A stretch of 64,000 bases of DNA from Anthoceros angustus (GCA_010909165.1 VJWM01000007.1:620001-684000), one strand, 5' to 3'. Counted from the stretch's first letter, positions 7,301 through 49,897 are shown. Numbers and translations are program-made. The notes: generated by a model from the letters alone, not told the origin.

Positions 7301-10167
7301 CACGTCAGCTCAACCACTATAGCACAGGCCACGCCATCAGACGGCCGCAGCCTCCATCTAAGGCATAAGGGCATCTCTCCTCGACACGTATCTCGATCGC
7401 CTTAGCTCGTGGTGAGCTTAGGCAAGCATCCGAGCTAGTCAGGTACGGTCGAGACCTTCCTCCATGGTGGACTCTTCTGATGGCATGACATAATAAACAG
7501 GTTAGAACATTCCTGCCCTAAACCCTAAGCCCTAAACCCAAGGCCATAATCGATTGCAATGATCAAGCTCGATTCCGCTTGTCATGAGTCGAACTTGCAA
7601 AACTAGGTAGTCCACTTGTACCGGGAGGAATGTGTCCACTATTAAGGGAGTCGGGCTTTATGCAGCTTTGCGTGGTACATGCCACTGATTGTGGTGGTAA
7701 CCTCGTCATGATCACGCCAGCGGATTATCCACCTCTAATTGCGGAAGGCGCTATCAAAACTTATAGTGACAAGAAACCTTTTGGCCATTATCTCAACCAT
7801 TGCAACTCCAAGTCCCTTGAAACGAATACAATAGTTAGAGGATAAAACAAACTGAGTTAGTTACAACTAACTAAGAGGTAACTAGCGCAGGTTAGACTAG
7901 CTAGAGTTATCTAGCGAACGGTTTGTGACTCTTCATATTGACGCTATAAAAGCCCAAATTGTTCTTCATAATTAAAAGCATTTGTTTCTCAGTTTCATAT
8001 GCTTCCGCACAAGCTCTTCCAACTCCAATACAAATTGCCTATGTGAAACAAGTAGATTGATGTATAGCAACTTGAAAAGGCCTTATGCAAATTATATGCA
8101 GTTTGGAAGGCCACAACTACATCGCTTCTAACCTTCCATAAGTAGCTCAATTGCCACATCATCCAAATACCCTTAAGGTTGCATTGGATAGATAATGCAT
8201 AGCAGGACGTAGTCGTCGAGAGTTGAAGTCTCTACGTAAGGCATCGCCACAAGACATCGTCATACAACGTCGCCACAGTTGGTCGTCATAGGACGTCGCC
8301 TCGAGACATTGTCACTCCATCAAGACATCAGTACCTAAGCATCCTGTCCACCAAATTCCCTTCTGTGTCAATCAACGTTGTCTTTGCTCCTTCTGCCGTT
8401 TATTCTTCACACAAAATCCTAAAAAGAGGGGAAAATACTATAAAAGCACAAATTAGCTGGCAAAGCCGACAAATTGTGGACTTCACATACCAAATTAGTA
8501 GAAGATGACGGTCCCTTCATAAATAAACTCAAATGGTCAAGGTATACGAATACTTAGGAGTCAACATATACACAAGAAAAATTGTGCATGAAGATGTACA
8601 GAGGGTTAAAGCAAAACTATGTGCGATGCAAAACTATATTACAAGGGAAAATATGAACATGACGGGATTTCTCTTCACTTGGTGGATCCGAGTTTGACCT
8701 CCATCAGGTCCTCCTTGCCTTCAAAATTGTTAGGCTTGGATATCTTCGACCCAACCGTTGCCCTTTGTGGCTGCCGCTGAGCTGCTGCGGCCACCTCAAC
8801 CACTATAGCCTGGGCCACTGCAACTCGCACGGCCGCAGCCTCCATCTAAGGCATAAGGGCATCTCTCTCCGCACAATGCATCTCAGACTGCCTTAGCTCG
8901 TGGTGAGCTTAGGCAAGCATCCGAGCTAGTCAGGTACGGTCGAGACCTTCCTCCATGGTGGACTCTTCTGATGGCATGACATAATAAACAGGTTAGAACA
9001 TTCCTGCCCTAAACCCTAAGCCCTAAACCCAAGGCCATAATCGATTGCAATGATCAGCCAAGCTCTGATTCCAGTTGTCATGAGTCGAACTTCGCAAACT
9101 AGGTAGTCCACTTGTACCGGGAGGAATGTGTCCACTATTAAGGGAGTCGGGCTTTATGCACTGGCTTGCGTAGTACATGCCACTGATTGTGGTGGTAACC
9201 TCGTCATGATCACGGCCAACAGCGGATTATCCAGCCTCTAATTGCGGAAGACTGAGCGCTATCAAAACTTATCCGTGACAAGAAACCTTTTGGCCATTAT
9301 CTCAACCATTGCAACTCCAAGTCCCTTGAAACGAATACAATAGTTAGAGGATAAAACAAACTGAGTTAGTTACAACTAACTAAGAGGTAACTAGCGCAGG
9401 TTAGACTAGCTAGAGTTATCTAGCGAACGGTTTGTGACTCTTCATATTGACGCTATAAAAGCCCAAATTGTTCTTCATAATTAAAAGCATTTGTTTCTCG
9501 CTTTCATATGCTTCCGCAAGCTCTTCCAACTCCAATACAAATTGCCTATGTGAAACAAGTAGATTGATGTATAGCAACTTGAAAAGGCCTTATGCAAATT
9601 ATATGCGCTTTGGAAGGCCACTACATCGCTTCTAACCTTCCATAAGTAGCTCAATTGCCACATCATCCAAATACCCTTAAGGTTGCATTGGATAGATAAT
9701 GCATAGCGGGGCGTAGTCGCCGAGAGTTGAAGTCTCGTAAGGCATCGCCACAAGACATCGCCATACAACGTCCACGCTTGGTCGTCAGGGGCGTCGCCTC
9801 GAGACATTGTCACTCCATCAAGACATCGGTACTAAGCATCCTGTCCACCAAATTCCCTTCGTGTCAATCAACGTTGTCTTTGCTCCTTCTGGCGTTTATT
9901 CTTCACACAAAATCCTAAAAAGAGGGGAAAATACTATAAAAGCACAAATTAGCTGGCAAAGCCGACAAATTGTGGACTTCACATAGTAGAAGATGACGGT
10001 CCCTTCATAAATAAACTCAAATGGTCAAGGTATACGAATACTTAGGAGTCAACATATACACAAGAAAAATTGTGCATGAAGATGTACAGAGGGTTAAAGC
10101 AAAACTATGTGCGATGCAAAACTATATTACAAGGGAAAATATGAACATGACGGGATTTCTCTTCACT
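7193..10167. repeat. Tandem duplication of a roughly 1.48-kb unit (7193-8671 and 8672-10159)
   Basis: The same sequence is read twice with many small indels; TCTTCACT at 7193, 8672 and 10160. Confidence 0.92.
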
Positions 10168-10330
10168 GTTTACGATATTTGCTTCAACCACCATACTTGT
10201 AAAAGACACTTGTACTTGAAGGAGTCCATCTTACAAATGAAACCTCTGCCAGGAAAAGGAATTACTAGCCAAGGGAGTAGCGGATACCTCACATCACCGA
10301 TAATGTCTTCTCTAATGCAAAACCATTAAT
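10010..10330 (+). mobile_element. Possible degenerate non-LTR (LINE) reverse transcriptase C-terminal fragment; further copies near 8530 and 11950
   Basis: LKW/VKVYEYLGVNI resembles the YKYLG motif of non-LTR RT domain 7; no YADD motif seen. Confidence 0.35.
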
Positions 10331-10469
10331 TGGGATGCAACACCCACTTAGATGTCTTCCAACATTTGCCAAAAGATACTACTCATTATTGCACAATGTA
10401 TTCGCATGTCGTTAGTTGCACTAGGCCATCATGCCATAATAACTAGAGCGTTGCGGCGACTGGAGCTCA

Positions 10470-11400
10470 TCGCCTCTATGTCCAAGCCCCGAAGTGTGAA
10501 TTCTTGCAAGAACGTCTGGAGTATTTAGGGCACATCATTGATGCTGAAGGTATCTGTGTAGACCCCACGAGATTCTGACTACTTTGGTGACTACCTCTAT
10601 GTTGGCATACTCTAATCCAGCCTTCCCTTTATTGTTACAGCTAATGCCTCCAATCTTGCCGTCAGTGTGGTCCTTCAACAAGACCAAGGCCAAGGACGCC
10701 AGCCGATTGCTTACTTCTCGCGAAAATTGGAGGGTGCCGAGTTGCATTGGACAAGCAGTGAAAAGGAGACTCAAGCTTAGGTCCTGGCTTTAAAGACTTG
10801 GCACTGTTTCTTGGAGGGTGCCCCTTTTGAGCTCGAGACAGATCATTGCCCTCAAAATTATCTCAAGCAGCAGACTCTCTCTCAAGCAAGCCCGGCTTGT
10901 TTAGAATACTAGTATCAAATCCGATATGTCAAGGGTCGTCACAACCAAGTTGCTGATGCTTTAAATATGATTCATACTAACGCACTTTAAAGTTGCGATT
11001 CAACCTAATTGGTAGGATGAAATTGCAAGGGCTCTCATATAGGATGTCGATGCCCACTCTACTTTTCATGCCCTTCGAGCTGGCTCCTTTGATTGGGCTA
11101 GGTGGGATGGTCTTCTATGGTATCGTTATCGGCTCTTCGTTCCTCAGGTCCCTCATATATGCCGGGCCTTGATTTCTAAAGCCCACAATGTTCCATTTGC
11201 AGGCCACCAGGGTGTAAATTGTACTACTACCATTCTTAGTCGGCTCTATTCTTGGCCTCAACTCACTGAGGATGTGTGAGATTATGTCCTCCTCTGCAAC
11301 TTCTACCAACACAACAAAGCTTGTCATCAATGTCCTACTAGCCAGCTCCAACCCTTGCCTGTCCCTTTGCTTCCTTGGGAGCAAGTCACACTTGACTTCA
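10470..11400 (+). mobile_element. Degenerate Ty3/gypsy pol (RT end, RNase H, integrase HHCC region), first copy
   Basis: KCEFLQERLEYLGHIIDAEG; IVTANASNLAVSVVLQQ...PIAYFSRKL; FELETDH; AHNVPFAGHQG; LQPLPVPLLPWEQVTLDFI. Confidence 0.88.
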
Positions 11401-12379
11401 TAATTAAAAGCATTTGTTTCTCGGTTTCATATGCTTCCGCACAAGCTCTTCCAACTCCAATACAAATTGCCTATGTGAAACAAGTAGATTGATGTATAGC
11501 AACTTGAAAAGGCCTTATGCAAATTATATGCGTTTGAAGGCCACAACTACATCGCTTCTAACCTTCCATAAGTAGCTCAATTGCCACATCATCCAAATAC
11601 CCTTAAGGTTGCATTGGATAGATAATGCATAGCATGACGTAGTCGTCGAGAGTTGAAGTCTCTACGTAAGGCATCGCCACAAGACATCGTCATACAACGT
11701 CGCCACAGTTGGTCGTCATAGGACGTCGCCTCGAGACATTGTCACTCCATCAAGACATCGATACTAAGCATCCTGTCACCAAATTCCCTTCGTGTCAATC
11801 AACGTTGTCTTTGCTCCTTCACGCGTTTATTCTTCACACAAAATCCTAAAAAGAGGAAAATACTATAAAAGCACAAATTAGTCAAAGCCGACAAATTGTG
11901 GACTTCACATACCAAATTAGTAGAAGATGACGGTCCTTCATAAATAAACTCAAATGGTCAAGGTATACGAATACTTAGGAGTCAACATACACAAGAAAAA
12001 TTGTGCATGAAGATGTACAGGGTTAAAGCAAAACTATGTATGCAAAACTATATTACAAGGGAAAATATGAACATGACGGATTTCTCTTTGTACGATATTT
12101 GCTTCAACCACCATACTTGTAAAAGACACTTGTACTTGAAGGAGTCCATCTTACAAATGAAACCTCTGCCAGAAAAGGAATTACTAGCCAAGGGAGCGGA
12201 TACCTCACATCACCGATAATGTCTTCTCTAATGCAAAACCATTAATTGGGATGCAACACCCACTTAGATGTCTTCCAACATTTGCCAAAAGATACTACTC
12301 ATTATTGCACAATGTATTCGCATGTCGTTAGTTGCACTAGGCCATCATGCCATAATAACTAGGCGTTGCGGAGCTCATC

Positions 12380-15265: not shown

Positions 15266-16501
15266 TCAAGATCTCATATTCTTAGCAATTTCACCGAACG
15301 CTTTAGCAAGCTCTCCTAATACATGGACCATAGCAGCTCCTTGCTCCTGCCTGAGGTTTCGGTCCATCAGACTGTTTTCCTTGAGAACATCTGTGAAGGC
15401 CTTGGTACTTTTGTCTAGAACGGAGATGATGAAGTCATCTGGGAACTGAGAGCTTAGCTGCCGCTTCCTGGACTTAAATACTGGCGTTTCTCTAGGAAGT
15501 TCTTCACCGTTTGAACCTAAGGATAGGAGCCATCACACCAAGTAAGCATGGATCGTGACGCGATCAGAAACGACATGGGGACATGCAGGTAGGATAAGGG
15601 CAGGCACTTACAGTCAAGAGTAGCAAAAATTTCATCTCCACTGGTCGGGCTGGAGTCATGGACTGGAGGAGCGGGGACCTCGGCATCACAAAAGTCCAAA
15701 TCATCCAAGTTCGGGGACTGGCTGTAGATGCGGTTTTTATGCTCGGCAGCAACATGCTTGGCTCCCGATTTCCTGCCAAACCAATCCATGCTTCGAAACA
15801 CATCCACGTCGAAGAGCGGGGGCAGCTTCAGCCGCTTCTTACGGTCCGACTTCATGAGCCAGTAGGTCTCGGTGCCACCCTTGAGCTTCTGGTAGTCCTT
15901 GATCTTCTTGTAGTCAGTCACCAGCTGACTCCATCGCTTGCGGCACTGGGCGTCAGATCGGTCACAGCCGTTGGCCTTGCAGTGCTCAGAAATGGCAGCC
16001 CATTTCTCGTCTGCGGACAATCGCAACCTTTCCTGGGAGGGCAGCTTTTTGCCTACGAATTGCCCCAAGGGCGAATGGATTTGGATTTCAGGAAGGGAAG
16101 CCGCGGCCTGGACCCCAGATCCATCACAGGTTTCCAACACAAGGCCACCGCGTGAGATGCCATGGCCTGGTAAGATCACATGAAATCAATCAACGTCACC
16201 GACCTTGGATGAAACCAGAGCATACCACTATGCCACTCAGGGCTTCCTCGTGCTGCCGCTGCCGCTTGTTGGACAAGTCTTCGAGCTCGCGGCGCTTGCC
16301 TAGCTCCTCGCTCTCGCGCTTCTTGGCCAGCACCAACACCTTGGTTTCGTGGATGGACCAGCGTACGCTACGATGCTGCTTCTCTTTCTCCTGCAGCAAC
16401 AACGCCTTGTCTTTTTGCTGCACAAGGCCCCCTTCCTCCTCCCCTTCTTCCTGCTCTTCCTCACCACCTGCAAACTCCGTGTGCGAACTCTCTGGGTCCA
16501 T
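15266..16501 (-). CDS. Trihelix (Myb/SANT-like, Myb_DNA-bind_4) transcription factor, ASR3/GT-like, multi-exon
   Basis: RWSIHETKVLVLAKKRE; KWAAISEHCKANGCDRSDAQCRKRWSQLVTDYKKIKDY...YWLMKSDRKKRLKLP; last exon ends ...MVHVLGELAKAFGEIAKNMRS* at 15266. First intron boundaries not resolved. Confidence 0.85.
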
Positions 16502-17173
16502 TCCCTCTCCCGACCCTACGCTGCTCCGTTCCTTGCCTCCCGCAAGGGTAGGTACGTAGCTGCTGCCTTACCTTCGGGTAAAAGGCCACGGTTGAAAGGC
16601 AAAGCCTAAGTTCATAATAGACGTGTACACTACACACCAGTTCCGAAGTTCCCCTTTCCCTCTCACATTCACGTAGCGTGCCAACTGGTCTAATGAATTT
16701 TTCATTTAACAAACAGAGTTAGGGCTGGTTTCCATGGACAAGTTTTCATCAACTTCAACTTCTCACATGACTATATGTATAATTAGGACAAAAACAAAGC
16801 AAGTTTGGGGGAAGTTTCAACAAACTCCCAGGATGAGCGGAGACGAGCGGGTCCAGCTAGTTGAACCGGGTACGAAAGCCATGGTGTCACGTTGAGGTTT
16901 TCCCCGGTCTCCCAAGCGCGGGCTTGCAACGCGGGCAATTGCAAGGACACGGTGCTGGAAAAGGGTGGGAGGCAAATGTGTAATCGATCAGGAAGGCAGC
17001 CGCTTGGGCAAGAAGGGAAAGCAAGGGTACGAGCTGAAGCAACGGTGATGGCTGAAGGCTTGGGGCAGCCGTCTCAAAGATGCAGCTTGCCATTAAGTGC
17101 GCTGCCTTCGAGTTCTTTGCTCCCCAATTTTCCCATAAGTTATCCATTGCATGGCTTTCATCTCGCCTTTCAG

Positions 17174-18253
17174 TTATCCGGCCAGGCCTGTCACCTCACA
17201 AATTGATGTACCCACAGCAACAGTCATGAGCCAGGGCCTGTCCACACACCAGGGATTTCAGGCACCGAGGAAAGTGCGGACATTGCAGGAGCTTCACATT
17301 TTGCAGGCAGCTTAGTAGATTGATCACGAATCCAGAGTGATGGGAGGCAACAGGGAAAAGAACAAGAAGGGTACTGAACGGTGGGAGGAAGTGGCACGCT
17401 ACTGCTATATGAATGGTGTGGTGTGTACTGCGAGTCAGGCCAGAAGTAAGTGGGACAATCTCGCAAAGGATTGGAAAAAAATCAATGACCATTGCCGGCA
17501 TCCATTAAGTGGACAGGATACGTATTGGCAGATGACTGTAAGAGATATAATGCGCTTGTCGACATCATATACAATCTGAAGGTTTATCTTAGCAATGTTT
17601 GCTCCATTTCTTGCAGCACGCAACCTGCATAATGTCACTGCTAGTTGCCAAGTACCTTGACTTTGGGAGCAATTGGAGTTGTTAAAGAACACTTCAAGCC
17701 GCTGCCCCAGACTTTGCAAACTTGGGTGACATCAACACCATGCCACCAGGTACTACCTTTTGCTTACTCCTCCTAACTACATTGATGAAACTTCAGATGA
17801 AGCTCATGACTTGCTGGCTTCTAATGTGCGCAATTTTTTGCAGACACGCCTAATTCTTGAAGAGAGGCCTCACCTAGTGCTGCCCCTCCAGAACCTAGTG
17901 AGGAGTCTCCATCACCAGCCGAGTCTTTGAACATAGGCATGGAGTCTGAAGATGCAGTTGATGCTTTGAAGGGCAGCCGGAAAAAAAGGAAGGTGCTCAC
18001 TTCTTAACGAGGTGAAGATTTGTTCATAACTATGACTAGCAATTTTGTGGAACAATTAAGAGACACAGAAGCCAACAAAGACAAGCGATACAAAGCTTAC
18101 ATGGATTTCCAAGAGAGAGTGCACCAGGACATTACGACGCACGACCGTGCTCTTGTGCAGACACAGACACAGAACCAGATAAGTGAAGGTTTTGTGCATG
18201 CATTCATAAAGATAGGTGATGCCTTGAACATGATAGGAGATAAAATGTCTTAG
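17174..18253 (+). pseudogene. Harbinger Myb/SANT (trihelix-like) DNA-binding gene, disrupted
   Basis: KVRTLQELHILQAA**IDHESRVMGG (TAG TAG at 17313-17318), ERWEEVARYC...QARSKWDNLAKDWKKINDH...YWQM; coiled-coil end ...FVHAFIKIGDALNMIGDKMS*; true start and exon structure uncertain. Confidence 0.8.
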
Positions 18254-18357
18254 AATCAGCCACTTGTATCTTGCATTTCACGGCTAGACCACAAGAAATT
18301 AGTTATGTTGTTACGAAGTTCGTCATCACCTGCATCTATATTGTAATAAGGGATAGT

Positions 18358-19630
18358 TCATAAGCCAGCATCATGTGTGTGCTGGTCATCATTTTCTATC
18401 ATAGCCATCTCTCCACGGTCAATCAGCACGTTATGTAGGTAGCAGCAGCACATCAAGAGTGCCCACAATGTGTCAATGTTAATCTTCCAAATGGTTCTCC
18501 CTAACATTCTCCATATACCTTTAAACTTACCGAATGCTCGTTCTACCACCATGCGGGTAGAAGAATGCTTAAAATTGAAGTAGTCTTTCTTCACAAAAAT
18601 ATTTCTTCCCGGAAATGGTGTAAGAAGCCACGGCAGTGAGGGATATCCCGTGTCTCCCACAATGTACTCCCTGGCGTTGCCCATCAATGCTCACCATTCA
18701 GGATATCTCCTGCCATAGCTTTTCGACAGAGGCCTGCATTACTGAAAATCCTTGCATCATTTACAGAACCCAGGAACCCAGCAAACACATCTATAAAATG
18801 CATCTTCATGTCAACTACCCCTTGGATGCAGACACTATAATCATGATTACGATCGAAGTAATCAGTTGCCATTTCCCCGGATATGAGCTCCATTTTGACG
18901 TGTGTTACGTCAATTGCGCGACAGCAATTGACTAATCCTTGATGCATTCAAATTCTGCCTTGCAGCTAGCTAGAGCTTCTCCTTGTGGCCAAGCAATGTG
19001 GTGTCTCCCTCTTCTGATCATGGCTCTTATGAATCACCACACAATTTTCGAAGCTGTAGATTCCGCTACACCAAAAAGTTTCGCAATGGACTTGAGAGTA
19101 TCCCCTATGGCAAGTCTTCTAATTGGTAGAGCCACTGGGATGTTAAACAGTAATTGCCTGTTTGGAATCCGTCGTAGAACTAATGGTGTCTTCCTAGTCA
19201 GATCCACAGCCACCAAGCTACACATATACTCAAATGTGGCAGGTGTCATTCTAAAAAACTCTCTAAAACGCTCAGGATCAGTTGTCCATGTTGCTTCCTT
19301 AAAAAAGGACCACCAAGCCAAACTCCTGTCCTTGATATATTGGTCACTAGGAGTACATTGCTTGCGTGAAAGAACTGAAATGTGAGTGGAAGCAAGAAGG
19401 AACATCATAGAAGAAATTGTGGTATGTGCACCTTCCTTAGCATTCAGTTGCCTTGCTTGCCTGCATGAAGGAAACCGTTTAGGTTGACGGTAAAGATAAT
19501 TTATTGCAACAGGCAATGCAATTGCTAAAGCAAGACCTGAACACACAACGAGCTTTTTATTCTTATCATGGCCATACATAGAATCAATGTCCTGAGCGGC
19601 CGCGCACTGAGCTGCATCACGGGCTTCCAT
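18358..19630 (-). pseudogene. PIF/Harbinger DDE transposase (DDE_Tnp_4, HARBI1/ALP1-like), disrupted
   Basis: FREFFRMTPATFEYMCSLV, AIDVTH (D at about 18910), GFLGSVND, IVGDTGYPSLPWLLTPF (D at about 18653), RMVVERAFGKFKGIWR (E at about 18542), CCYLHN; in-frame TGA at 19034 and frameshifts near 18943 and 18685. Confidence 0.93.
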
Positions 19631-21970
19631 CAGCAGGCGCTCAAAGTGAAGAATTAGCTATCGCACTCAAGTGACTTGCATAAAGTGCAAAGCTTGGGAC
19701 GAAAGCCGGACTCCCATGAGCGCTGAGTAGCTGGTCGCTTGCGAGTGATGAGTAGCCGGTGAAGGTCCTTTTTTTACGGAAGGAATGCACATATGGAAGC
19801 CATGGAAAGTGGCAACACCGTTCCGGTCCAATTGCAAGTTGAAAAAGCTGGCGTAAATATCGGCCCTCATGGAAACCAGCCCTTAGAGGGCCTCGTCTTG
19901 CTACATCGCTACATCGTGCTGGCCAACCTCATAGTAGAGGGGTCGCTCTACCCCGTTCCAACCTGTACAATTAGCCTTGAGAGCCTTTTTTTAGAGAAAA
20001 TGAATCGAGATATATTAAAAATAAAAAACCTTAAGGGCTGGGAACCTCAACCTAGAAAGTTTAGCCTAGCAAACACAAGAATGGATGATAAGTGGATCAT
20101 AAGTTCATGAGCAATTTGCTCTTTGAAGTGACATTTTGAGATGGTTTGTGTATGGTAAAGCGATGACATTATGCATATGAGGGTGTCATAGGTCCGACCG
20201 GAAAAATCAAAGAAACATATAACCAAGCACCCGCTCTCACATTCCCCACTATGTCATTGCCATTCCAATAGCAATTGTGGAAGCAACCTAGGTCCGATTA
20301 TGCGGACACACAATTTCAAGTCCATCGAACTATTTCCGGAAATGGTGTAAGAAGCCAGCGATGAGGATATCCGTGTCTCCCACAATGTACTCCCTGGCGT
20401 TGCCCATCAATGCTCACCATTCGTGATATCTCCCGCCATAGCTTTTCGGCGAGGCTGCATTCTGAAAATCCTTGCATCATTTACGAACCGGGAACCCGGC
20501 AAACATCTATAAAATGCATCTTCATGTCAACTACCCTTGGATGCGAACACTATAATCATGATTACGATCGAGTAATCGGGTTGCCATTTCCGGATATGAG
20601 CTCCATTTTGGCGTGTGTTACGTCAATTGCGACGAATTGACTAATCCTTGATGCATTCAAATTACGCCTTGCGACTAGCTAGAGCTTCTCCTTGTGGCCA
20701 AGCAATGTGGTGTCTCCCTCTTCGATCATGGCTCTTATGAATCACCACACAATTTTGAATGTAGATTCCGCTACACCAAAAGTTTCGCAATGGACTTGAG
20801 AGTATCCCCTATGGCAAGTCTTCTAATTGGTAGAGCCTTGGATGTTAAACAGATTACTTTGGAATCCGTCTAGAACTAATGGTGTCTTCCTAGTCGGATC
20901 CACCACCAAGCTACACATATACTCAAATGTGGCGGTGTCATTCTAAAACTCTCTAAAACGCTCAGATCGCTTGTCCATGTTGCTTCCTTAAAAGGACCAC
21001 CAAGCCAAACTCCCGTCCTTGATATATTGGTCACTAGGAGTACATTGCTTGCGTGAAAGAACTGAAATGTGAGTGGAAGCAAGAAGGAACATCATAGAAG
21101 AAATTGTGGTATGTGCACCTTCCTTAGCATTCGCTTGCCTTGCTTGCATGAAGGAAACCGTTTAGGTTGACGGTAAAGATAATTTATTACAGCAGTAATG
21201 CAATTGCTAAAGCAAGACCGAACACACGAGCTTTTATTCTTATCATGGCCATACATAGAATCAATGTCTGAGCACGAGGCATCACGGGCTTCCATCGTGA
21301 CGCTCAAAGTGAAGAATTAGCTATCGCACTCAAGTGACTTGCATAAAGTGCAAAGCTTGGGACGGCCGGACTCCATAGGAGTAGCTGGTCTTGCAGTGAT
21401 GAGTAGCCAGTGAAGGTCCTTTTTGGAAGGAATGCACATATGGAAGCCATGGAAAGTGGCAACACCGTTCGGTCCAATTGCAAGTTGAAAAAGCTGGCGT
21501 AAATATCGGCCCTCATGGAAACCAGCCCTTAGAGGGCCTCGTCTTGCTACATCGCTACATCGTGCTGGCCAACCTCATAGTAGAGGGTCGCTCTGCGTTC
21601 CAACCTTGAGAGCCTTTTTAGAAAATGAATCGAGATATATTAAAAATAAAAAACCTTAAGGGCTGGGAACCTCAACCTAGAAAGTTTAGCCTAGCAAACA
21701 CAAGAATGGATGATAAGTGGATCATAAGTTCATGAGCAATTTGCTCTTTGAAGTCGGCATTTTTGAGATGGTTTGTGTATGGTAAAGGCAGTCAGACATT
21801 ATGCATATGAGGGTGTCATAGGTCCGACCGGAAAAATCAAAGAAACATATAACCAAGCACCCGCTCTCACATTCCCCACTATGCCGCTGCCATTCCAATA
21901 GCAATTGTGGAAGCAACCTAGGTCCGATTGCGGCAGACACACAATTTCAAGTCCATCTGAACTATTTCCG
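18606..21970. repeat. Tandem duplication of about 1.7 kb covering most of the transposase, the right TIR and flanking DNA
   Basis: About 20334-21966 repeats about 18606-20333 with many 1-4-nt deletions; second right TIR plus TTA at 21514-21531. Confidence 0.92.
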
Positions 21971-22339
21971 TGGAAAAATAGCCTAAGACATCCCAGTCAT
22001 ACTTTGGTTAAGGAACTCCAAGAGTTTCAGAAGAGGGAGTAGAGGCTCATAATGTTCATCCAATGGAAGGTCAAATCTCATAACAATGGAAGAGACAAAG
22101 TGAGTCAAAGCGTCCGTATGAACGTTCTTTCACCAATCCAACTTCAGGATATCACAATAGAGCATAAGATAATCACGAAAGATAAGGCGTTAAGCAATCA
22201 CAAGTGGAACGATCCAAGATAAAGATGAAAGCTTCTTGGCCAATAGACCAGTGAGGCGAGAACCCAACAAGTACAGATAGGGGCATTGTATGCAATTTTT
22301 GCATGAAACTAATTCATACTAATGTGGCCTTTTGTGGGC

Positions 22340-48826: not shown

Positions 48827-49897
48827 ATGGCAACGGGTGGCGGCAGTGCTGCTGGGCACTCCAATGTTCTCAGGAAGGTGCTTCTAAGTTATTTGTATGT
48901 GGGGATATGGATCAGCCTGAGCTTTGCGGTGATCGTTTTCAACAAGTACATCTTGGACCGGAAATTCTACAATTGGCCCTTCCCTATTTCGCTGACCATG
49001 ATTCACATGGGGTTTTGCTCCAGTCTGGCTTTCCTGTTGGTGCGAGTCTTCAAGTTCGTGGAGCCCATCTCAATGACTCGCCAGTTGTACATGTCCTCTA
49101 TTGTACCCATTGGTGCACTTTATGCGCTGTCGCTATGGCTGTCAAACTCGGCTTATATTTACTTGTCAGTGTCTTTTATTCAGATGCTGAAAGCGCTTAT
49201 GCCTGTGGCTGTGTACACAGCCGGTGTTTTGATGAAGAAGGAAATCTTCAAGGGACAGACTATGGGTAACATGGTGTGCATCTCACTGGGAGTTGCCATT
49301 GCTGCTTATGGCGAGGCGAAATTTGATGTCTGGGGAGTGACTTTGCAGCTTGGTGCTGTTCTTTTTGAAGCAGTAAGGTTGACTTTGATTCAGATTTTGT
49401 TAACGTCGAAAGGAATCAACCTGAATCCCATCACTACTCTGTACTATGTAGCCCCTTGCTGCTTTGTGTTCTTGGCTATTCCATGGACATTTGTGGAGCT
49501 CCCTGTGCTGCGGGAAATATCCACTTTTCACTTTGACTATGTTTTGTTTGGGGCCAACTGCGTCTGTGCGTTTGCTCTGAACCTAGCTGTATTTCTTCTC
49601 GTTGGGAAGACCTCGGCTCTTACCATGAATGTCGCAGGCGTAGTCAAGGATTGGCTGCTCATTGCCTTTTCATGGAGTGTGATCATGGATAGGGTGACTA
49701 CTGTTAATCTTATTGGTTACGGTGTAGCTTTTCTCGGAGTTTGCTACTACAACCATGCAAAGCTTCAAGGGCTTAAGCTGAGAGAAATGCAGAGGAAGGG
49801 CGGTGAGGGTGATGAAGAGACAGTAGCTTTGGTCGAACAAAAGTTGGAGAGGAAGGAGGATGCGAACGGCATTTTAGGGCGGAAAGCAGACACGTAG
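48827..49897 (+). CDS. Nucleotide-sugar transporter of the TPT/NST family, UDP-arabinofuranose transporter (UAfT)-like, single exon
   Basis: 356-aa ORF; [66 protein letters not shown]. Confidence 0.92.

Follow-up and report, generated by a model that had tools for sequence, protein, structure and literature searches.

A decayed two-gene PIF/Harbinger transposon in Anthoceros angustus that probably lies beside, and outside, the domesticated ALP1 orthogroup

We describe a PIF/Harbinger transposon in a 64,000-nt stretch of the Anthoceros angustus genome (GCA_010909165.1 VJWM01000007.1:620001-684000), referred to below as the window, whose positions serve as coordinates throughout. A perfect pair of ends, a target-site duplication, two genes, and a phylogeny of the transposase make it likely that this is a dead, autonomous-type element of a streptophyte-specific subfamily, belonging to a clade beside, and outside, the land-plant ALP1/At3g55350 orthogroup, and that it is a mobile cousin of the domesticated lineage. 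The element is neither an ALP1 gene nor demonstrably a direct ALP1 progenitor. ALP1/ALP2 and HDP1/HDP2 are the textbook cases of paired domestication of both Harbinger proteins, and a full-text literature search returned no description of a delimited transposon from the branch beside ALP1, nor of a mobile one in bryophytes.

Results

A two-gene element bounded by perfect ends

From TTA to TTA the element spans 3,161 bp (16722-19882). An original prediction, made from the DNA sequence alone, had claimed perfect 15-bp terminal inverted repeats (TIRs) and a TTA target-site duplication, and both are borne out exactly (Table 1): short, perfect 15-nt TIRs with TTA at each side are the ends of a PIF/Harbinger element. 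The TIR pair is the sole 100% complementary inverted pair of at least 15 nt in a 3.8-kb region, in which, by our own arithmetic, about 0.002 such pairs would be expected by chance. Between the TIRs stand a transposase gene and a trihelix-like gene whose predicted convergence is upheld by Pfam matches on opposite strands.

The transposase is readable as four minus-strand pieces (19630-19037, 19033-18947, 18938-18690, and 18672-18361), two of which match the Pfam family DDE_Tnp_4 (PF13359) at 5e-10 and 3e-16 and mark the gene as a Harbinger nuclease. With the pieces scored separately, the C-terminal piece alone reaches 21.6 bits against Plant_tran (PF04827), for which the cut-off is 22, and 59.7 bits against DDE_Tnp_4. 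We placed the lesions by aligning the pieces to relatives, and this alignment recovers the one nonsense codon and two frameshifts that had been predicted. Relatives carry Arg at the nonsense codon, which makes a CGA-to-TGA change likely. All three residues of the catalytic D/D/E triad are kept, again as predicted, each aligning with the triad of the relatives.

The second gene supplies the Myb/SANT/trihelix DNA-binding protein of a Harbinger element: model positions 26-86 of Myb_DNA-bind_4 match 17337-17579 on the plus strand, between the TIRs, at 8.6e-8. It carries four in-frame stops of which the original prediction made no mention (TAG TAG at 17313-17318, TGA at 17858-17860, and TAA at 18005-18007). 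Two of the three tryptophans of the Myb domain are retained, and the position of the first is occupied by Arg (CGG, one change from TGG). Since a stop and two frameshifts interrupt the transposase and four stops the Myb gene, this copy can make neither protein. The claim that both genes and both ends are in place holds for their positions, and not for the genes themselves, both of which are dead.

Relatives of the transposase

A phmmer search of 1.84 billion representative proteins with the 198-aa N-terminal piece (E of 0.001 or less) returned only 97 relatives, the best at 52% identity. Angiosperm and fern ALP1-group proteins were among them, and the named near relatives came from liverworts and ferns. 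The nearest relative of all, P0003 (287 aa, from a short Logan contig), is 57-73% identical to the pieces and, used as a query, retrieves ALP1-named proteins. Its source (L001, Logan SRR33208241 contig, 132-1158) is a decayed copy too, the frame breaking before the N-terminal Met; its C-terminal CCCYLHNVL block is repeated in another frame at 973-1158. A further search, seeded with a transposon-like Taxus protein and meant to fetch canonical PIF/Pong, added multi-copy sequences from Ginkgo, Taxus, and Adiantum, sequences from Marchantia, Riccia, and Klebsormidium, an At3g55350-like clade, and animal Harbingers; no canonical angiosperm PIF/Pong was among its results. The At3g55350-like clade includes a Striga protein named "PIF / Ping-Pong family of plant transposases," which we take to be the TAIR label for At3g55350.

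The contigs of other relatives (L002 to L007, among which L003, L004, and L005 are overlapping contigs of one locus) yielded no convincing TIRs and a single weak convergent homologue of the Myb C terminus. This homologue is on L007 (ENA ERZ25073694 ctg131647, 7959-10613), an AT-rich eukaryotic contig on which a related transposase is split into two open reading frames (ORFs); the last 80 residues of the element's Myb gene weakly resemble the convergent ORF downstream (E of 0.007), which suggests the same tail-to-tail, two-gene layout. A metagenome scan for the 16-nt end of the element gave chance matches alone, with no transposase and no likeness past the seed. The best of these, 21 nt in contig L126, sits, by eye, in an apparent gene for a bacterial periplasmic protein.

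A probable place beside the ALP1 orthogroup

We built a maximum likelihood tree of 45 sequences under LG+C20 with posterior mean site frequencies (PMSF), rooted on animal Harbingers. The transposase pieces, which had been searched separately, were concatenated, with an X marking every break, for alignment and trees only. The tree stands without canonical PIF/Pong/Ping, Arabidopsis ALP1, At3g55350, HDP1, and vertebrate HARBI1, and its ALP1 clade is anchored by RefSeq-named orthologues.

A streptophyte clade receives support of 100/100. Inside it come a Klebsormidium pair, then a gymnosperm/fern transposon-like clade, and then a clade of 27 sequences (93/89) that splits three ways: the element clade, an unnamed group (P0107/P0109/P0110), and a Riccia protein (P0006) joined with the ALP1 orthogroup. 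In the element clade (96/93), the window's transposase and P0003 pair at 100/99, and three proteins from metagenomes accompany them. Support for the Riccia protein plus the ALP1 orthogroup is 96/92, and the element is excluded from the orthogroup, which contains moss and liverwort orthologues (Physcomitrium XP_024387823 among them), ferns, gymnosperms, the At3g55350-like clade, and the ALP1 clade. An approximately unbiased (AU) test rejects a grouping of the element clade with the vascular ALP1/At3g55350 group (p=0.015). The predicted resemblance to ALP1 and At3g55350 is partly upheld: the transposase is clearly closer to proteins of the ALP1 type than to the other sampled Harbinger lineages, and it stands outside their orthogroup.

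An angiosperm-wide DDE_Tnp_4 clade on a long stem, its triad degenerate (Y-D-x), was also recovered, outside the streptophyte clade that contains ALP1; its members, from Acorus, Cuscuta, Papaver, and wheat (P0041, P0060, P0070, and P0093), probably represent another domesticated Harbinger nuclease family.

How close is the tie to ALP1?

The alternative that survives best is that the element is a streptophyte Harbinger like any other, without a particular tie to ALP1, its likeness being that of a broad subfamily that includes multi-copy gymnosperm, fern, and charophyte sequences and in which many transposons would be equally close. We take this possibility seriously and judge it unlikely. Identities and motifs both cut two ways here. 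Identity to the gymnosperm/fern transposon-like copies (39%) is at least as high as that to angiosperm ALP1 (38%) or At3g55350-like proteins (36%; about 315 residues for the ALP1/At3g55350 comparison), yet the highest identities to any named proteins, 43-45%, are those to the ALP1 orthologues of Physcomitrium, Riccia, and Marchantia, and animal Harbingers stand at 22-31%. Five motif blocks had been put forward as ALP1-like in the original prediction, and two of them, NCC.AID.TH and REYIVGD.GYP.LPWL, run throughout the whole streptophyte clade and lend the ordinary-transposon explanation some weight. The blocks TF.Y.CSLV and W(R/K)F...HH..WP, however, are common only to the element, the ALP1 orthogroup, and the neighboring lineage (P0107/P0109/P0110/P0006), and are missing from the gymnosperm/fern transposon-like, charophyte, and animal groups. 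To this extent the motif claim stands.

The tree bears on the same question. The phylogenetic check attached to the original prediction, run here without its canonical references, places the element in a clade with ALP1 when the topology is left free, at the 93/89 given above. An AU test, however, does not reject a grouping of the element clade with the gymnosperm/fern transposon-like clade (p=0.196). This result weighs against reading the element as a mobile cousin of ALP1, and it does not stand by itself. The statement that the transposase is closer to ALP1 than to typical PIF/Pong rests on the absence of PIF/Pong from our exhaustive and word searches, not on the tree; the element's presumed mobility is read from its anatomy; and the surrounding assembly contains many errors. 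On balance, comparison of the proteins moderately supports a placement beside ALP1.

Head-to-tail repeats and the reality of the lesions

The right 1.28 kb of the element, together with 0.46 kb of flank (18606-20342), is followed head to tail by a second copy of itself. This copy brings a third perfect end (21514-21528), again bordered by a TTA and by the same flanking sequence; the original prediction had noticed neither the duplication nor the third end at this side. Aligned to each other, the second copy is short of 106 nt, spread over 53 small sites, and the first of 13 nt, over 9 sites, and substitutions number only 36; this pattern looks like sequencing noise and not divergence. The second copy is probably either an artifact of assembly (gap filling) or a real duplication left unpolished.

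Two further head-to-tail repeats, 1.5-1.9 kb in size, occupy 7193-8679/8672-10167 and 9473-11403/11396-13292. All three repeats fall within 15 kb, show 91-94% identity, and have indel events at least as numerous as substitutions, and microhomology of about 8 bp is present at each of the three junctions. One of the head-to-tail repeats contains, and so doubles, a piece of a related transposase 36 residues long (minus strand, 10209-10316 and 12125-12232). This piece corresponds to the REYIVGD..LPWL block, shares 57% identity with the element, and is what remains of another member of the family.

Such an assembly invites the suspicion that the actual genome holds an intact, potentially active element, and that the stops and frameshifts are errors of noisy long reads. 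Three indel-rich repeats within 15 kb speak for it. We nevertheless hold it to be quite improbable. All three transposase lesions are the same in both noisy copies, despite 62 indel sites elsewhere, which makes random assembly error unlikely; frameshift 2 is a multi-base deletion; and the two genes together hold five stop codons, whereas substitutions are an atypical error for assemblies of this kind. Comparison of the two copies thus indicates that the transposase lesions are real and not random errors. Least probable of all is a decaying pair of domesticated host genes beside a coincidental inverted repeat and TTA: a perfect 15-nt inverted repeat with identical flanking TTA is very improbable by chance, the layout is that of a standard Harbinger, and both genes have many stops.

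Surroundings of the element

A second trihelix-like gene (15517-16501, minus strand; Myb_DNA-bind_4, 4.5e-10) starts about 220 bp off the left end of the element, outside the TIR. A short intron splits its Myb domain, which is 36% identical to that of the element, and the gene may either belong to the host or be left over from another Harbinger. Ordinary genes of the host follow on the right-hand side of the element (30179-57503): a GH17 glucanase at 30.2-31.0 kb, exons of an AP-5 beta subunit at 34.6-38.3 kb, a fragment of an H+-pyrophosphatase at 39.8-42.1 kb, a single-exon TPT-family transporter at 48827-49897, and two Branch-type glycosyltransferase segments of 78% identity at 50.2-52.8 and 53.9-55.9 kb. 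The window has a G+C content of 50%, and an Rfam scan of it gave zero matches.

Table 1. Features of the Anthoceros angustus element and its duplicated right side, in window positions
Feature	Position	Strand	Basis or remark
Left target-site duplication, TTA	16719-16721	none	Directly precedes the left end; identical to 19883-19885
Left TIR, GGGCTGGTTTCCATG	16722-16736	+	Perfect 15-nt match to the reverse complement of the right end
Myb/trihelix gene, first part (Myb_DNA-bind_4)	17229-17537	+	GTAAGA at 17538; exon limits inferred
Myb/trihelix gene, C-terminal part	17844-18253	+	tttttgcag acceptor upstream; ends with TAG at 18251-18253
DDE_Tnp_4 transposase pseudogene	18358-19630	-	ATG at 19630-19628; stop at 18360-18358
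Catalytic Glu, in VVERAFG	18541-18543	-	Alignment with the triad of relatives
Frameshift 2 and deletion of about 13 nt	18673-18689	-	17 nt versus about 10 codons in relatives; same in the duplicated copy
Catalytic Asp 2, in GSVNDAR	18756-18758	-	Alignment with the triad of relatives
Catalytic Asp 1, in AIDVTH	18909-18911	-	Alignment with the triad of relatives
Frameshift 1	18939-18946	-	8 nt versus 3 codons in relatives; same in the duplicated copy
Nonsense codon, TGA	19034-19036	-	Arg in relatives; same in the duplicated copy
Extra inner end motif, subterminal, TTTCCATGG	19800-19808	-	60 bp inside the right end
Right TIR, exact reverse complement of GGGCTGGTTTCCATG	19868-19882	-	Perfect 15 nt
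Right target-site duplication, TTA	19883-19885	none	Outer border of the right end
Second copy of 18606-20342	20333-21976	none	Head to tail, indel-rich; 91% identity

Discussion

Proposed history and mechanism

A two-gene anatomy and an insertion at TTA are what can be seen directly in the window; the mechanism that we propose is taken from the Harbinger family. A 3,161-bp, autonomous-type element would have inserted at a TTA about 220 bp upstream of the neighboring trihelix-like gene and decayed since. In an intact element, the Myb/trihelix protein would bind the ends and the subterminal motifs and recruit the separate DDE nuclease, which would then excise the element and paste it into another TTA, with 3 bp duplicated in the process. 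The present copy can be no more than a passenger, one that could move only with both proteins furnished by intact relatives.

What a mobile cousin could tell us

As a concrete mobile outgroup, the element could help to date the domestication of ALP1. It could also show which changes accompanied domestication, such as the loss of the D/D/E triad and of the Myb tryptophans, and it could serve to test whether the transposon proteins already contact Polycomb components.

A bolder proposal, which we offer tentatively and hold to be rather doubtful, is that the lineage behind the domesticated ALP1 survived: a sister lineage would have kept moving, as an entire transposon with both genes, in hornworts and their relatives once the land plants had diversified. 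On this view, and provided that hornworts have no true ALP1 orthologue, the "ALP1 homologue" of a hornwort, its DDE triad intact, by which the domestication was dated to the land-plant ancestor (Liang et al. 2015, PMC4671723) could be a transposon copy like the present one. If such a mobile sister lineage is real, its intact members would permit tests of which ALP1 properties predate domestication, among them binding to a Myb partner and contact with MSI1 and Polycomb repressive complex 2 (PRC2). The value of a single dead copy in this regard is that of a lead and not of a result.

Comparison with known systems

Maize PIF, rice Ping/Pong, and zebrafish Harbinger3_DR provide the canonical plan, and the element agrees with it in its short TIRs, its 3-bp TTA duplication, its pairing of a DDE_Tnp_4 nuclease with a Myb/SANT/trihelix gene, and its DDE triad. 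PIF prefers the target CWCTTAGWG. The reconstructed target of the element, GAG-TTA-GAG, fits this preference in its right half. The element differs from the canonical ones in the trihelix type of its partner (Myb_DNA-bind_4), in belonging to a streptophyte-specific clade with ALP1, and in that this copy is dead.

Among domesticated systems, the second gene invites comparison with ALP2 and HDP2 (Velanis et al. 2020, PMC7282668; Duan et al. 2017, PMC5339849), which fill the same role within the two-gene design. ALP2 proteins lack all three tryptophans, and reported orthologues reach no further down than ferns (Velanis et al. 2020, PMC7282668). ALP2 combines the loss of three tryptophans with blocks of its own, whereas the element's Myb gene has two tryptophans and a Myb_DNA-bind_4 match. 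Set by eye against S1 Text of PMC7282668, that gene has no visible ALP2 blocks (conserved regions I-III); its layout, again by eye, is HDP2-like, with a Trp-containing Myb domain and a C-terminal helix. As the Myb gene has no visible ALP2 features, the idea of an ALP1/ALP2 progenitor gets no support from the second gene. What endures of the original claim of a mobile relative of that progenitor is a two-gene, TIR- and TTA-bounded Harbinger near ALP1; the link to ALP2 lacks support, and both genes of this copy are dead.

ALP1 (At3g63270) and At3g55350 are domesticated Harbinger nucleases (Liang et al. 2015, PMC4671723). The element belongs to the same Harbinger subfamily, at 36-45% identity, and has TF.Y.CSLV, W(R/K)F...HH..WP, NCC.AID.TH, and REYIVGD.GYP.LPWL in common with them. 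It keeps D/D/E at the catalytic positions, whereas the angiosperm ALP1 sequences read DFV, DTQ, DVV, and DIE, and the At3g55350-like sequences DDQ, DDK, and DEQ. Our triad table reproduces the pattern of Liang et al. (2015, PMC4671723), in which DDE was kept in non-angiosperm orthologues and lost in two angiosperm clades. The genes of the ALP1 orthogroup are solitary, with no TIRs, target duplication, or adjoining DNA-binding gene (PMC4671723), whereas the element has all of these, an adjoining Myb gene included. The conserved 5' intron of ALP1 and At3g55350, for its part, is not in evidence in the element.

The bryophyte ALP1 orthologues offer the closest comparison. Those of Physcomitrium (XP_024387823), Marchantia polymorpha (AXG93_4003s1400), and Riccia have an intact DDE triad, like the element. 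The Physcomitrium gene has introns, and the Marchantia gene is one long open frame. A script that recovers the element's own TIRs as a control found no TIR/TTA pair within 8 kb on each side of the Physcomitrium and Marchantia loci. No partner gene is called at the Physcomitrium locus, and none was recognized beside the Marchantia gene, where the one neighbor considered as an ALP2-like partner proved to be a GC-rich gene call of low complexity in which no motif of Myb or ALP2 could be seen by eye. Solitary bryophyte genes with no TIR/TTA pair fit a domestication that preceded the moss-liverwort split, and they argue that the Anthoceros element represents a separate, transposon-borne cousin lineage.

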